Assembly (NCBI GenBank): GCA_976226885.1
Contig: OZ320314.1
Span: 49,228,001 to 49,292,000 of the forward strand
Length of the DNA stretch: 64,000 nt
Direction of reading: 5' to 3'
Origin: Iphione sp. A-MEVVRFRX5
Lineage: Eukaryota
Below, piece by piece: positions 16,159 to 21,321 of the stretch; the first letter of the stretch is position 1; the number at the start of each line of letters is the position of its first letter. The position numbers and the translations under genes were made by a program. Below the pieces are notes generated by a model that saw only the letters and a program-made list of their open reading frames with translations, was not told where the DNA came from and searched no databases.

Positions 16159-16172
16159 ATAACAGCTATAAC

Positions 16173-16175
<3 letters not shown>
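16159..16175 (+). repeat. Left target-site duplication of the PLE
   Basis: ATAACAGCTATAACCTA is repeated exactly at 21305-21321. The first 3 nt (ATA) are ambiguous with the element end, so the TSD is 14-17 bp. Confidence 0.92.

Positions 16176-16208
<33 letters not shown>
16175..16208 (+). repeat. A34 tract at the 5' junction of the PLE
   Basis: 34 consecutive A between the TSD and the pLTR. The same position in the 3' pLTR has only A7 (21031-21037). Confidence 0.95.
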
Positions 16209-16210
<2 letters not shown>

Positions 16211-16478
16211 CTTGACAAAAGGAATCAACAATAAGCATTCATAAAGGAAAAACACTATCATAGAATAAGGTGCCTGATGAGACATAAGTCGAAACCGTGT
16301 TATAGAAGTGCATAACTAAATAACCAGACCAATAAGATATCATAGTGAGACCTCACCACAACAGCACCCATGGCAACAGACAAACAGAATATCAGTTAAA
16401 TAAGGGGCACACAGGGCTGGTTAACCACTTGACTCGGTAGCACCAACAGAGCAAAGGCCTAGCCACGTCTAACATATA
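16202..16478 (+). repeat. 5' pseudo-LTR (direct repeat, 277 bp including A7)
   Basis: Identical to 21031-21307 (offset 4829). Confidence 0.97.
16269..16444 (+). ncRNA. Type I hammerhead ribozyme with long stem III insertion (5' copy); predicted cleavage after 16439
   Basis: GGTGC(16269-73)-CTGATGA-GAC/ATAA/GTC-GAAA-CCG…CGG(16435-37)-TA-GCACC(16440-44). All core nucleotides and stems I, II and III can form. Confidence 0.85.
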
Positions 16479-16879
16479 CCAACCAACAACGCCCGCGCTC
16501 ACCCGAATCGAGTTCACGACCAGCCCGCGTGCCCTGACGATTACGTAAGCAACGGTCTACCACCATTTGACCACACACGATAAAAGCTTATACAGACACA
16601 AAAACGACACTATCCCCAACCGATGAATAAAAGATACCAAGGCGCCCTAGGCACCTTAATAACATCTAAGAGAGAAAAAGAAATAATACATACCAAAAAG
16701 ACACTCACCAACAGGGAGTTTCTTTCAACTGAACAACAGATAGACTAACCGCCACGTAGACGACAGTAAAACCGACCTGGTATTACTAAAAATAGCGACA
16801 CCAGAGAGGTCGCTGCGCGACAAAAAGAAAGAGAACCAACAAAACACCTTTTTCGTGATACAGTACCCATACATAAGGA

Positions 16880-18205
16880 ATGAAGAACAAACGAATACAA
16901 ACAGGAGACGGTTTGAAAAGGTCGATACAATCGACCTCAAACACAGAGAGTGGTACAACCGCACCTACCGAAAACAAGAATCAGATCACAGACCAAGACG
17001 TGGTACAACCGCGCTCAGAGAAACCAGAAAAACTGATAATGTCCAGACAGAGACGAGTGTCCCATACCCTCACTGACCTCTGCATCTTGGGTGGAGATCA
17101 GGACCAGGAAGAGGAATACGAGGAGGAGATGGACAACAATATGGACGTTGGGAGCAAACCCATCGAAACTCCCGAGGGAAGCTATAGATACAGACTAGAC
17201 GAAATCGTCACTAAGACACAACCCAGTACCTCAGACCAACAACCCTCCACCGACAAAGAGGAGGTAAGTTTCACATTAGACATCAAGAAGATAGAACAAT
17301 ATAAAAAAAGCATCCTCAACACAATTAGCGAATTACATAACCACATTACACATGACTCATTCACTAAGTCACGTTTAAAATCAAGCAACAGAGCGAGAGA
17401 CACCCCCAATGCAATGATCCGACCAAGTACGAAACGAAAAGACTGTAATGAAAACGACCAACTCTTCAAAAAGAGAAAACTCACAGAGACAACACACCAT
17501 CTGACTAATACCAATGTTTCTGCTCCTTTACAGATGCAGCCCTGGTTGAAGAACCTAAGCGAAAGCTACACAAACAGCTGGAACAGCGCCATGAGGAAAA
17601 TCGCCACCTCGGCCCGTAGTCAGGTGAGGGCGGAGTTCATAGAACAATGCCTAGAACACGGCCTAATCCTAAAGAACAACATCCATACGGTGCCTTTGGC
17701 CGGCTTCTATAGAGGAGATGACGAACTCCAAGCGGATATGTCAGAACTAAGGCAGAGGCATGCAAGAGAACAAATGCAAAGATGTGAGGTGTCACTCCGT
17801 AGGACATCAAGAATAACGAAAGATGAAGCACACTCTGAGATAGGAAGAGTAGAGACACAGCTGCCCCCGAAAGACATTGCAGCAAGCAGAGCGTACGTGA
17901 AACAACTGGGAGAACGAGTGATGAGGGAAACAAGAGCAGACATTGAACAAAAGAAGACTACACTCGTTATGACCAATCTAACGACCAACGTGGTAGCCCC
18001 CTTTCACTCCGCATCCCAGAACTATGCTCCATCATCGAGACCGCCTTTTCACAGGCTGGGTCTGAGGGGCATCACCTCCAGACGAGGAAGAAGCAGTCAG
18101 ACAAAAAGAGTTGCCTCAGACCCAGTAGAAAGCAGCAACAAACGTACAACCATGAGCCTCACAGAGGAAGAGCTACAAATACTGTCCCTCTTCAGGAAAC
18201 AGTAA
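16880..18205 (+). CDS. PLE ORF1, 441 aa: disordered/acidic N-terminus, bipartite NLS, helical/coiled-coil C-terminal half, Arg/Ser-rich tail
   Basis: Uninterrupted 441-codon ORF inside the element with the same A-rich codon style as ORF2. It contains KR-x10-KKRK and an FIEQCLEHGLI motif. Function is not assignable from sequence. Confidence 0.8.
   Translation: MKNKRIQTGDGLKRSIQSTSNTESGTTAPTENKNQITDQDVVQPRSEKPEKLIMSRQRRVSHTLTDLCILGGDQDQEEEYEEEMDNNMDVGSKPIETPEGSYRYRLDEIVTKTQPSTSDQQPSTDKEEVSFTLDIKKIEQYKKSILNTISELHNHITHDSFTKSRLKSSNRARDTPNAMIRPSTKRKDCNENDQLFKKRKLTETTHHLTNTNVSAPLQMQPWLKNLSESYTNSWNSAMRKIATSARSQVRAEFIEQCLEHGLILKNNIHTVPLAGFYRGDDELQADMSELRQRHAREQMQRCEVSLRRTSRITKDEAHSEIGRVETQLPPKDIAASRAYVKQLGERVMRETRADIEQKKTTLVMTNLTTNVVAPFHSASQNYAPSSRPPFHRLGLRGITSRRGRSSQTKRVASDPVESSNKRTTMSLTEEELQILSLFRKQ
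17264..17533 (+). other. Candidate in-frame (phase 0, 270 nt) intron within ORF1
   Basis: Donor GAG|GTAAGT, branch-like CTGACTAAT (17501-17509), and pyrimidine tract TTTCTGCTCCTTTACAG|ATG, which is rare on an A-rich strand. Confidence 0.6.
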
Positions 18206-18207
18206 AG

Positions 18208-18431
18208 GTAAGTACCTTTGAAATATCAACAAGCAATCGCTACGAGATACTAACAGAGACATACCCCAACCCAGACATGTCAAAAGAACAAGGTGAAACT
18301 CGCCCTAAAAAGAGTTGTATCACACCAAGCAATAACAAAACAAATGAGTCCGTTGAAATCTCCAAGAATAGACTATCCCCGTTACAGACAGGGAGCAGAT
18401 TTCCACGCAATGATATACGATTCTTTTTCAG
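18208..18431 (+). other. Candidate intron joining ORF1 to ORF2 in frame (alternative weak donor at 18202)
   Basis: Donor AAG|GTAAGT lies 2 nt after the ORF1 stop and the acceptor is TTCTTTTTCAG|A. Both junctions are phase 2, so removing 224 nt (or 230 nt) aligns the two frames. Confidence 0.7.
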
Positions 18432-21012
18432 AAACCTGAACAAGAGTGAAGAACAGACCAATCCGGCCCATACGGATGGAGGGGAGCAGACAATGGCCGT
18501 GGAAAAACGACCTCCAACCAGGGTAGATGGAGAAGAGCAACTGCCGTCCAGAGAGAAGCAACTATCACAAGAAAGTAGTAACAATACTGAAAAAGATAAG
18601 CAAGAGAGAGACAACTCGTTTGTGAACAATAAAAACAACCAAAACCAGAACACTTGCATAATAAAGATGTTTAATAAAACTGAAGTTTGTCAAGATTCGT
18701 TCTGTCTAAATGAATTAGAAACAATGCTCGACACTATACCTATGAATTATAAAACGAAAGTAGTGAATATATCAGACCACATTCTGAACAAAAATGAACT
18801 CACTCTATTAGAAAAGGGCCTAAGTTTCTGTCCAACACCGGGAGAATTAGACTTAGGTAAGAAAAAGAACGACTTAGACAATTTTCATAATAAATTACGA
18901 TTCAGATCATACTTCAGAGATAAACCAGTCCATACTTGTAATGAACACAATTACAAACTCAAGAAGATAGACAAACGAGACCTGGTAAAAAGAGGCCCAT
19001 CAGGACCCCCTTGGCTTGAAACGATGATACACATCAATGAAATGAAACTTGACACAATACACACAAGGGAACCAAGACATAAAAATTTAACACAAGAAGA
19101 AAAGAACGCCATTAGGAGTCTTAAAGCAGACAGAGAGGTAATTATTAAAAAGGCCGACAAAGGAGGAGCAGTCGTGTTAATGAACCGATCTGACTATAAA
19201 CAAGAAGGATACAGACAACTGCAGAATCAGAAATTTTACAAGGAATGCGACAAAAACACGACGAAGATATTCCAAAGCGAACTGACAACAATTGTAGAGA
19301 GATTGATTTACCAAGAGGAGATAAGCCCATCAACAGGCCAACTGCTGCTGGCGAACAACCCAAGAACACCAGAACTATACTTACTGCCGAAAATACATAA
19401 GAAACAGTCACCCGTACCAGGAAGACCTGTTATATCAGCAAACGGTTGCACGACTGAGAAAATATCAGCATACGTAGACGATTTTCTACGCCCAATCGCA
19501 ATGGAACAACGTTCCTTCATTAAAGATACTACAGACTTTCTTAACAAACTATCCAACACCCATATTAACGCCACAGATATCCTAGTGACTATGGATGTGA
19601 CATCACTCTACACGAATATACCCAACGAAGCTGGCCTTGAAGCCACACGAAAGAAACTAGTGGAACACAGGAAAACATCACAGAAACCCACAAACGAAAC
19701 AATATTATACCTGCTAGAACAAGTTTTAACGAAAAACAACTTCAGATTCAATGGCAGGGATTACCTGCAAATAGGAGGCACAGCAATGGGCACGAGAGTA
19801 GCCCCCTCCTACGCCAACATCTTCATGAGCTACTTTGAGGACGAATATATTTACACACACCCACTCCAGCCAAGCCTATATGTAAGATTCATCGACGATA
19901 TCTTCTTCGTATGGCCACATGGACAAAAACGATTAGATGAGTTCCTAAGAAAGATACAAGGAGCTTCACCACATATATCCTTCACCACAGAAATCTCTGG
20001 AAAAGAAGTGAACTTCCTTGACACGACAATTCGTAAGGAAGAGGACGGAGGTATTGAAACAGACTTGTACATCAAAGATACTGACGTCAACAGCACCCTC
20101 TTATACACTTCAGCCCATCCAATTAGAATGAAGAACAATATCCCGTATGGACAGTTCTTAAGAATACGAAGGATCTGCAGTAGGGATGAGGATTTCATCT
20201 CTAACTGCTTAAACAAATCCGCTAACTTCTTAGAAAGAGGTTACCCAAAAAAGGTAATATCACGAGCACTCCATGAGGCCTCGAAAAAAGACAGGAACAG
20301 CCTCCTAAGAGCAGGGACTAACCACACTAAAGACCAAAATCCAGAGAAGAAGAACATCCTAGTTACCACGTATCAACCCGGTAACAAGGAAATAGAAGAC
20401 ATAGTGAGAAAAAACTGGAAAATACTCCATAAATCTAAGACTACCAGAGAAATTGCAGAGAATGGGATCATGGTTGCCTACAGAAGACCTAAAAATTTGA
20501 GAGATCACCTAGTCAGAGCTAGGCTTCTGAGCTATGAAGGCACAAGCAACAATAAAAACCAACTGAAGACTAATATATGCAATAAGCAAGACTGCAGGTA
20601 TTGCCCAACTATCAACACGATTGACAGGATAATGAATAAACACACCAAGAGATCGTATGAAATCAAACGTAAAGCAAACTGCAACAGCAGTAACCTGATA
20701 TATGCCATAACTTGCAAGAAGTGCAAGATCCACTACGTAGGACAAACAAAACTAAGAATAAAAGACAGATTCAGACATCACTTTTATGACATTAAGAAAT
20801 CCAACAACAAAAACCTGGTTATGGAACATTTCAACAAAAAAGACCATAACCCACAATCAGACCTAATAATAAGAGTCCTGGATTTCATCCACCTGTCGCC
20901 AAAAGAAGACAGTTCAAAAATATTGAGGAATAAACTGGAACAAAGATGGATCCACAGATTACGTACACTGAGCCCATATGGACTGAACATCCTAGATGGT
21001 GAATTCCAATGA
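18277..21012 (+). CDS. PLE ORF2, 911 aa: reverse transcriptase + Cys-rich linker + GIY-YIG endonuclease
   Basis: KGLSFCPTP, KADKGGAVV, LYLLPKIHK, PGRPVIS, TMDVTSLYTNIP, QIGGTAMGTRVAPSYANIFM, RFIDDIFF, VNFLD and HP…IPYGQFLRIRRICS. Linker CNKQDCRYC; endonuclease LIYAITCKKC-x3-YVGQT…R…H…H…E…GLN. No stops or frameshifts. The true N-terminus is uncertain because the first 52 codons lie in the candidate intron. Confidence 0.97.
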   Translation: MSKEQGETRPKKSCITPSNNKTNESVEISKNRLSPLQTGSRFPRNDIRFFFRNLNKSEEQTNPAHTDGGEQTMAVEKRPPTRVDGEEQLPSREKQLSQESSNNTEKDKQERDNSFVNNKNNQNQNTCIIKMFNKTEVCQDSFCLNELETMLDTIPMNYKTKVVNISDHILNKNELTLLEKGLSFCPTPGELDLGKKKNDLDNFHNKLRFRSYFRDKPVHTCNEHNYKLKKIDKRDLVKRGPSGPPWLETMIHINEMKLDTIHTREPRHKNLTQEEKNAIRSLKADREVIIKKADKGGAVVLMNRSDYKQEGYRQLQNQKFYKECDKNTTKIFQSELTTIVERLIYQEEISPSTGQLLLANNPRTPELYLLPKIHKKQSPVPGRPVISANGCTTEKISAYVDDFLRPIAMEQRSFIKDTTDFLNKLSNTHINATDILVTMDVTSLYTNIPNEAGLEATRKKLVEHRKTSQKPTNETILYLLEQVLTKNNFRFNGRDYLQIGGTAMGTRVAPSYANIFMSYFEDEYIYTHPLQPSLYVRFIDDIFFVWPHGQKRLDEFLRKIQGASPHISFTTEISGKEVNFLDTTIRKEEDGGIETDLYIKDTDVNSTLLYTSAHPIRMKNNIPYGQFLRIRRICSRDEDFISNCLNKSANFLERGYPKKVISRALHEASKKDRNSLLRAGTNHTKDQNPEKKNILVTTYQPGNKEIEDIVRKNWKILHKSKTTREIAENGIMVAYRRPKNLRDHLVRARLLSYEGTSNNKNQLKTNICNKQDCRYCPTINTIDRIMNKHTKRSYEIKRKANCNSSNLIYAITCKKCKIHYVGQTKLRIKDRFRHHFYDIKKSNNKNLVMEHFNKKDHNPQSDLIIRVLDFIHLSPKEDSSKILRNKLEQRWIHRLRTLSPYGLNILDGEFQ

Positions 21013-21030: not shown

Positions 21031-21307
21031 AAAAAAACCCTTGACAAAAGGAATCAACAATAAGCATTCATAAAGGAAAAACACTATCATAGAATAAGGT
21101 GCCTGATGAGACATAAGTCGAAACCGTGTTATAGAAGTGCATAACTAAATAACCAGACCAATAAGATATCATAGTGAGACCTCACCACAACAGCACCCAT
21201 GGCAACAGACAAACAGAATATCAGTTAAATAAGGGGCACACAGGGCTGGTTAACCACTTGACTCGGTAGCACCAACAGAGCAAAGGCCTAGCCACGTCTA
21301 ACATATA
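21031..21307 (+). repeat. 3' pseudo-LTR (direct repeat)
   Basis: Starts 18 nt after the ORF2 stop and is identical to the 5' copy. Confidence 0.97.
21098..21273 (+). ncRNA. Type I hammerhead ribozyme with long stem III insertion (3' copy); predicted cleavage after 21268
   Basis: Identical to the 5' copy: CTGATGA at 21103, GAAA at 21120, CGG-TA-GCACC at 21264-21273. Confidence 0.85.
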
Positions 21308-21321
21308 ACAGCTATAACCTA
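21305..21321 (+). repeat. Right target-site duplication of the PLE
   Basis: ATAACAGCTATAACCTA, identical to 16159-16175. Confidence 0.92.

Follow-up and report, generated by a model that had tools for sequence, protein, structure and literature searches.

Penelope-like elements (PLEs) carry hammerhead ribozymes in their pseudo-long terminal repeats (pLTRs) (PMC4209133, PMC6765202), and in animals these ribozymes are presented as minimal, dimeric motifs in which helix III is absent or only 1-2 base pairs (bp) long (PMC4209133, PMC6155905, PMC6765202, PMC7761336, PMC7229834). According to reviews, they barely cleave, they need two copies and their role is a mystery (PMC7761336). One discontinuous hammerhead has been described, that of Clec2 (PMC6155905, PMC2920678), and a survey of PLEs with relaxed descriptors by Craig et al. 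noted half cores only 35-50 nucleotides (nt) apart (PMC8557442). Here we analyse a 64-kb stretch of contig OZ320314.1 of Iphione sp. A-MEVVRFRX5 (positions 49,228,001 to 49,292,000, hereafter the window), which holds a PLE with two pLTRs, and we consider it quite probable, from comparison with related elements, that each of these pLTRs encodes a discontinuous type I hammerhead that folds in cis across a long insert in helix III and cuts after A16439 and A21268, respectively.

All coordinates are positions in the window, on the + strand unless stated. Both pLTRs contain GGUGC-CUGAUGA-GAC(AUAA)GUC-GAA-ACCG, a gap of 137 nt and then CGGU-A|GCACC. The parts of the motif are listed below, where R1 is the covariance model introduced further on.

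16269-16273, + strand: helix I, 5' strand GGUGC, read from the sequence, partner 16440-16444
16274-16280, + strand: catalytic core C3-A9, CUGAUGA, read from the sequence
16281-16290, + strand: helix II hairpin GAC(AUAA)GUC, including the G10.1-C11.1 pair, read from the sequence, pair probability about 0.8
16291-16293, + strand: core G12 A13 A14 (GAA), read from the sequence
16294-16302, + strand: helix III, 5' strand ACCG, U mismatch, GUUA (A15.1 is 16294), from the sequence and the R1 alignment
16303-16429, + strand: insert that closes helix III, 127 nt, or 137 nt when only 4 bp are assigned to helix III, from the sequence and folding
16430-16438, + strand: helix III, 3' strand UGAC, U, CGGU (U16.1 is 16438), from the sequence and R1
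16439, + strand: A17, predicted cut between 16439 and 16440, from its position in the hammerhead consensus
16440-16444, + strand: helix I, 3' strand GCACC, from the sequence and R1
21098-21273, + strand: second copy of the split hammerhead, 4829 nt downstream, cut after 21268, from the sequence and R1

In helix III, ACCG (16294-16297) faces CGGT (16435-16438) and, beyond a U.U mismatch, GUUA (16299-16302) faces UGAC (16430-16433), an arrangement that R1 aligns to the 7-bp helix III of the family. The strands follow each other in the order helix I 5' strand, core, helix II, GAA, helix III, U16.1, H17 and helix I 3' strand, with helix I open, helices II and III closed and the insert inside helix III, which is the topology of type I. 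All letters of the full hammerhead consensus are present at 16274-16294 and 16438-16439, including the A15.1-U16.1 pair, a non-G H17 and G10.1-C11.1, and the 22-nt core has only two sites in the window, one per pLTR, against 0 expected. The coordinates given in a first-pass annotation of this DNA for the motif, for the helices nested within the insert and for both cuts were all correct.

Without constraints, ViennaRNA predicted the hammerhead junction for the 176-nt motif in isolation and also for the complete 280-nt pLTR, with energies that are ordinary relative to shuffled sequences (z-scores of -0.39 for the motif and +0.35 for the whole pLTR). The first-pass annotation had put the chance of finding the exact 10-mer complement within 200 nt at about 6e-4; the arithmetic is right, and under a looser rule, in which any partner within 700 nt is accepted, G-U pairs are allowed and contiguous pairs are scored, the window score of 9 contiguous pairs is matched or beaten in 5.6% of shuffles. 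Both this figure and a fold stability no better than that of shuffles would suit a distal CGGUAGCACC that is merely a chance complement of a decayed half-hammerhead. Since the window score is reached by that proportion of shuffles, the argument rests on the family and not on the single copy, which is only suggestive, and it is the comparative evidence that makes the case solid: the layout recurs, with covarying helices, in 54 relatives, and a model trained without the window finds both of its copies at an E-value of about 1e-11. A chance complement, which we regard as exceedingly improbable, is refuted by these data as far as sequence analysis reaches.

The DNA of the relatives was taken from ENA assembly sequence (L001-L003 and L005-L007), from the nemertean Lineus longissimus (L004) and from 80 metagenome contigs that were picked by protein profile, so that their choice was independent of any ribozyme. 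These loci were scanned for a core with helix II followed by any downstream U-H site pairing with the bases that flank the core, with most core letters required and G disallowed at H17. The split layout was found on the + strand after the second open reading frame (ORF2) in L001-L007 and in most of the 80 metagenome loci; nearly every locus of sufficient reach has it, and the opposite strand has almost none. The loci that lack the full motif mostly stop before a possible partner, or combine a helix I of 2-3 bp with a helix III of 6-9 bp. Among the cores with at least 250 nt of downstream sequence, 57 of 63 score at least 9 paired positions, against means of 4.75 when the downstream sequence is shuffled and 3.2 when ORF sequence is transplanted in its place. 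In total, 54 distinct split hammerheads were obtained from the relatives, with helix III closed by 127-553 nt and a distance from A15.1 to H17 of 138-564 nt (median 209). Their core reads CUGAUGA in 48, CUGACGA in four and CUGAAGA in two cases, and H17 is A in 25, C in 22 and U in seven, G having been disallowed by the scan. Exact-pattern scans of viral and genome contig collections for the core of the window type gave 0 matches, and among the ORF2 homologues no relative is nearer than about 50% protein identity.

Across the 54 relatives, pairing in helix I is found in 48-54 sequences at positions 1-4 and then drops to random level, helix II is paired in all 54 at positions 1-3, as a 3-bp helix, and helix III is paired in 50-54 at positions 1-6 and in 39 at position 7, with random pairing beyond. 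Every variable helix position shows several Watson-Crick types. In an unforced test, whole regions were aligned with MAFFT and then folded with RNAalifold without constraint: 12 sequences of one subfamily gave the three hammerhead helices plus hairpins within the insert, and 24 diverse sequences gave helices I, II and III only, with double changes in 11 of 14 pairs. The covariance model R1, built from 12 metagenome elements with the window excluded, matches both window copies end to end (16267-16446 and 21096-21275) with 38.6 bits and an E-value of about 9e-12, and its search of the 64-kb window returned nothing significant beyond these two pLTR copies. When 45 matches were aligned to R1, which places the catalytic letters without requiring them, unlike the layout scan, 93.7% of the cells paired against 75.8% in shuffles (0 of 500 as high) and changes on both sides occurred in 12 of 14 pairs, and sliding the partners by 1-3 columns reduced pairing to 21-46%.

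Covariation and a covariance-model search allowing a long helix III had been named beforehand as checks, and both came out in favour of the motif, in that helices I-III covary and both window copies were recovered. A split type I hammerhead with a long insert in helix III in both pLTRs, as originally proposed, is thus borne out by the 54 relatives, by the covariation of the three helices and by an independent model, and the predicted cut GUA| at 16439 and 21268 has comparative support for its position. Judged by these alignments, the split layout is kept by selection and not by chance in more than 50 related elements and is the norm for the whole clade to which they belong. It had also been expected that standard searches would miss the motif; indeed, a search of the window against Rfam gave no hammerhead match, either at the gathering threshold or at E-values up to 10. 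This is expected because those models leave no room in helix III for more than 100 inserted nt, and the miss concerns detection rather than the fold.

The first-pass annotation had also called the insert structured, which held only in part. Nested helices are present, AAGUG (16306-16310) with CACUU (16426-16430) and UAACCAG (16321-16327) with CUGGUUA (16417-16423), with predicted pair probabilities of 0.5-0.9 in the isolated pLTR. However, the window insert is no more stable than its dinucleotide shuffles (z-score +0.09, -20 kcal/mol for 137 nt), and unforced RNAalifold of the 24 diverse sequences found no RNA structure within the insert that is common to the clade. The inserts of the relatives have a mean z-score of -3.0 against dinucleotide shuffles, 41 of the 54 lying below -2.

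In one subfamily (L018, L020, L031-L033, L042, L043, L045, L049 and L070; alignment A2, columns 41-124), two hairpins with compensatory changes, CCUCCUG/CAGGAGG and GGUCGCA/UGCGAUC, lie directly inside helix III, and here part of the insert is, by the pattern of these changes, a conserved RNA structure. We also considered a nearer alternative partner, GGUCGCAG, which one subfamily carries some 50 nt past its core, and rejected it as belonging to a covarying hairpin inside the insert.

What the inserts have in common is of another kind, namely sequence. The 8-nt palindrome TGACGTCA occurs in 34 of the 54 inserts (alignment A3, L009-L083), against 0.24 expected, at a density of 3.08 per kb compared with 0.027 per kb elsewhere in the loci (about 110-fold), and its median distance upstream of the cut is 98 nt; a second insert motif, GTAGYYAWTGACGAC, comes after it. 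Variants of TGACGTCA destroy the palindrome instead of compensating, a pattern that suits a protein-binding site better than an RNA helix. TGACGTCA is the sequence of the cAMP-response element, to which ATF/CREB factors bind. In the window, a palindrome-like sequence occupies the place that TGACGTCA has in the relatives:

16346-16355, + strand: palindrome-like TGAGACCTCA, inside the GUGA-GACC-UCAC hairpin, 93 nt before the cut

The promoters of PLEs are located in the pLTR (PMC2377424, PMC6765202), and the insert makes up about half of the window pLTR. The distribution of TGACGTCA suggests a pLTR promoter between the two halves of the ribozyme, and the helix III 'loop' would probably double as regulatory DNA of the pLTR.

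The same palindrome could in principle join two RNAs, and many inserts hold it. With two identical pLTR copies making cross-pairing possible, and with the described animal PLE hammerheads working as dimers (PMC4209133, PMC6765202), the two halves might act between molecules or copies, and not in cis across the insert. This seems to us very unlikely, given that each partner is found within the same pLTR and on the same strand, invariably 127-553 nt downstream, that helix III has no palindromic loop, that the inserts of the relatives fold stably alone (the mean z-score given above), which would bring their ends together, and that TGACGTCA variants break the palindrome with no compensation.

An insert of this kind might also be read as a spliceosomal intron, whose removal would leave a compact hammerhead. 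In its favour, the intron of Drosophila virilis Penelope ends at helix I of its hammerhead (PMC4209133), and GU is frequent at positions 4-5 of helix III. There is, however, no conserved 3' AG (at the 3' strand of helix III, position 8 is A in at most 23 of 54 and position 7 is G in 25 of 54), the window itself has no 3' AG (TGACTCGGT), and removal of the insert would destroy most of the covarying 7-bp helix III. We rejected the intron for want of a conserved 3' AG and put its probability at next to nil.

The position of the cut relative to the 3' end of the element was compared in the four elements that have two pLTRs and clear boundaries. In all four, both the repeat and the inserted copy stop at a fixed distance past the cut, and the repeat's upstream part varies from 23 to 209 nt.

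16440-16478, + strand, window: tail from the cut to the 3'-end point of the inserted copy, 39 nt, contains CCACGT, from the repeat boundaries
1433-1472, L003: cut to end, 40 nt
2717-2755, L004: cut to end, 39 nt
717-752, L005: cut to end, 36 nt

Of three Logan contigs that were inspected as well, one includes the motif and extends 37 nt past the cut, and two break off before reaching it. Relatives carry a YCGT motif about 10-14 nt before the end, and several run into (TA)n at most about 60 nt after the cut, (TA)n being the preferred target of related PLE clades (Craig et al., PMC8557442). Besides being conserved and covarying in its three helices, the motif keeps a constant location, downstream of ORF2 and some 36-60 nt short of the element's 3' end. 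In the Poseidon element PAc, reverse transcription starts internally, just 3' of the hammerhead, in an AC-rich stem-loop (PMC11167929), and by analogy the window arrangement agrees with such an internal start. If reverse transcription starts 3' of the hammerhead, the template RNA must still hold sequence 3' of the cut.

On the reading that we prefer, a discontinuous hammerhead folding in cis, the enzyme half (16269-16302) would be transcribed first and would provide the 5' strand of helix I, CUGAUGA, the 3-bp helix II, GAA and the 5' strand of helix III. The insert would then fold on itself, through the nested helices in the window and through several hairpins in relatives, bringing the substrate half (16430-16444) to the core, where it would meet the enzyme half on one RNA via helix III (4 + 4 bp in the window and 7 bp across the family) and helix I (5 and 4 bp, respectively). 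The closed junction would be cut after H17, that is, after A16439 or A21268. Because helix III is stable, folding as a monomer would be possible and the dimer of minimal PLE hammerheads would not be needed. Cleavage in vivo and its purpose we infer; the role is most likely the trimming of longer-than-unit transcripts to unit ends with 5'-OH and 2',3'-cyclic phosphate. Unit-end trimming and circle ligation have been proposed for PLE and retrozyme hammerheads (PMC4209133, PMC7229834), and trimming would be consistent with copies whose first base is always upstream of the ribozyme and whose last base falls at a fixed point past the cut.

Several points weigh against this reading. A look-up of sequencing runs for the whole element listed none. 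With 4-5 bp in helix I and 3 bp in helix II, both stems are short, and no loop-loop tertiary contact was seen; for these reasons activity at physiological Mg2+ may be low, as has been measured for other PLE hammerheads (PMC4209133). The PAc hammerhead is dispensable for insertion in vitro and no reads end at its cut (PMC11167929), and the inserted copy in the window spans both sides of both cuts, so that the template cannot have been a linear cleaved monomer. As to the comparative evidence, the alignment of 45 matches was fitted to the R1 structure and the scan picked partners by their pairing, a selection bias that the unforced RNAalifold and the shuffle nulls answer only in part. Finally, predictions for longer stretches of sequence favour other pairings over the hammerhead fold, as detailed below.

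Some of these points would suit a three-helix junction that serves as a structural scaffold, for example a fold recognized by the element's reverse transcriptase (RT) close to where reverse transcription begins, with cleavage lost or marginal. With the cut 36-40 nt short of the element's 3' end, an RNA cleaved in its 3' pLTR would lose the RT start site; moreover, helices I and II are short as noted, and the PAc hammerhead, besides being dispensable, shows protein-dependent cleavage (PMC11167929). On the other side, CUGANGA, GAAA and G10.1-C11.1 stand in the same register throughout while the free position 7 varies, although the value of this constancy is limited, since the scan required core letters and it is no test, and helix covariation shows selection on the fold. 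A scaffold in place of a ribozyme seems to us unlikely, and we retain the cis-acting hammerhead as the preferred reading.

The competitor of the hammerhead fold in the window is a long imperfect hairpin. Once the folded sequence extends about 100 nt past the pLTR, the prediction switches to pairing between two arms, over about 33 bp.

16404-16458, + strand: left arm of the alternative hairpin, covering the end of the insert, the substrate half, the cut site and the start of the tail, from folding and duplex energy
16491-16535, + strand: right arm of the alternative hairpin, in the 5' untranslated region (UTR) outside the pLTR, from duplex energy

The AC-rich stretch around the 3'-end point (16478) is predicted to form the apical loop of this hairpin. 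The duplex energy of -52.3 kcal/mol compares with means of -29.9 (standard deviation 4.1) for shuffled partners and -21.7 (standard deviation 6.6) for other windows of the element, 0 of 300 being as good in either control, and the most favourable structure in which the hammerhead is retained lies 14.5 kcal/mol above the alternative fold. In a mock transcription series, hammerhead pair probabilities stay at about 0.5-0.8 until the 3' end reaches about 16500 and are 0.00 from 16530 onwards; the hairpin and the hammerhead fold are, in these models, mutually exclusive in the window. The 3' copy of the hammerhead is also out-competed in silico once ORF2 sequence is included, and such weak stems are, by these predictions, easily out-competed. 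Of the counterparts in other elements, that of L005 is a 12-bp perfect inverted repeat that beats shuffles (1 of 300) and not other windows of its own element, and those of L003 and L004 are not significant by duplex energy against the controls. The number of base pairs spanning the 3'-end point was tried as a test and set aside as non-discriminating, duplex energies being used instead.

The first-pass annotation had suggested that the long domain would delay folding and could be an RT-binding platform or a regulatory switch. The alternative pairing would give the idea of a switch a concrete form, with the competitor sitting outside the insert. We can tentatively picture, with no great confidence, a two-state RNA in which the substrate half pairs either with the enzyme half, ready for the cut, or with the 5' UTR, and in which the helix III loop serves as promoter. 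If so, the 5'-UTR hairpin would hide the cut site and present the RT start in its AC-rich tip, which would leave the same RNA open to trimming or to copying. Through the conserved TGACGTCA, signals for transcription would come to lie between the ribozyme halves, and transcripts starting from the TGACGTCA region would have just the substrate half at the 5' end and the ribozyme in full at the 3' end.

The element that carries these motifs has the following features.

16202-16478, + strand: 5' pLTR, from the direct repeat (spacing 4829 nt), ends set by mismatch walk
21031-21307, + strand: 3' pLTR, from the direct repeat and mismatch walk
16880-18205, + strand: ORF1, 441 amino acids, between the pLTRs
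18277-21012, + strand: ORF2, 911 amino acids, PLE reverse transcriptase whose C terminus bears a GIY-YIG endonuclease
16162-16174 and 21308-21320, no strand: target-site duplication ACAGCTATAACCT, 13 bp, read directly from the sequence
16175-16208, no strand: A34 at the 5' junction, after the target-site duplication, read directly from the sequence

The two pLTRs are identical over 277 nt, and the window is concluded to hold a young, full-length, two-ORF PLE that looks like a single recent insertion. The internal copy carries A7 (21031-21037) where the 5' junction has A34. A Pfam search of the 441-residue ORF1 gave no match, and this ORF is far shorter than those of 609-895 amino acids that lie directly upstream of the RT ORF in the relatives L088, L089, L090, L005 and L006. 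ORF2 has 1482 homologues, the best at 40-50% identity and with RT domains (RVT_1); its GIY-YIG domain is at residues 807-897, and upstream of it C768, C773 and C776 (C-x4-C-x2-C) are invariant in the protein alignment A1. A CX2-5CxxC linker motif has been assigned to the Neptune and Nematis clades of PLEs (Craig et al., PMC8557442), and the window element combines the features of this type, namely RT with GIY-YIG, the cysteine motif, and hammerhead-bearing pLTRs derived from a partial tandem. In Lineus longissimus (L004), the region 700-2460, immediately upstream of the 5' pLTR, contains several families of tandem repeats whose units measure about 100-211 nt.

Among known systems, the minimal hammerheads of animal PLEs (Cervera and de la Pena 2014, PMC4209133; reviewed in PMC6765202 and PMC6155905) are alike in lying in the pLTR of the same class of element and in having the same core, a helix I that is open and 4-5 bp long, and no evident contacts between loops. 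They are described there as dimers with helix III absent or 1-2 bp long and closed by a palindromic loop and with a helix II of 6-8 bp, whereas here we find a covarying 7-bp helix III, an insert of 127-553 nt and a 3-bp helix II, with folding in cis possible; the window motif accordingly does not have the make-up of a minimal dimeric hammerhead. Similar in one respect are the 'large helix III' type I motifs of endonuclease-lacking PLEs of fungi and protists, for which the same text reports a stable helix III and cleavage by a single motif; these motifs are compact and bacterial-like, with no insert of at least 100 nt mentioned in the available portion, and their hosts are telomeric elements without an endonuclease (PMC4209133).

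Like PAc (Frangieh et al. 2024, PMC11167929), the window element has an AC-rich loop near the 3'-end point, here 39 nt after the cut. In PAc itself, the hammerhead is a compact motif that overlaps with the start of the ORF, and competition between ribozyme and initiation hairpin, which is only predicted here, is not described for PAc (PMC11167929). Animal non-LTR retrozymes (PMC7229834; bioRxiv 10.64898/2026.07.22.740005) share the type I motif and a link to PLE pLTRs, and their units of 170-400 nt are about the size of the insert; their hammerheads, however, are compact, the rest of the unit closes helix I, and they are non-coding tandem repeats (PMC7229834, bioRxiv 10.64898/2026.07.22.740005).

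In the papers that could be read, and in literature searches for split, bipartite or long-helix-III hammerheads, we found no description of the present layout. Where reviews depict animal PLE hammerheads as minimal, a large clade of marine-invertebrate elements (more than 50 distinct ones) instead keeps a hammerhead able to fold as a monomer, and surveys that reported 'no canonical hammerhead' or only 'HHR_core' in some PLE clades (PMC8557442) may need to be repeated with long inserts allowed. Ribozyme, promoter-like site and the 3' end used in reverse transcription would all lie within one short stretch of RNA, and the layout makes the function of the PLE hammerhead testable by mutation. A parallel in architecture is the hammerhead in the 3' UTR of mammalian Clec2 (Martick et al. 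2008), in which the strands likewise lie hundreds of nt apart on one transcript (PMC6155905, PMC2920678). That ribozyme is of type III: its helix I holds the insert, of 150-1500 nt, and its substrate strand is the upstream one (PMC6155905, PMC2920678), whereas the motif described here is of type I, with helix I open, the insert in helix III, the enzyme half upstream and a retrotransposon as host. It does not belong to the Clec2 type and would be, after Clec2, the second natural type of discontinuous hammerhead.

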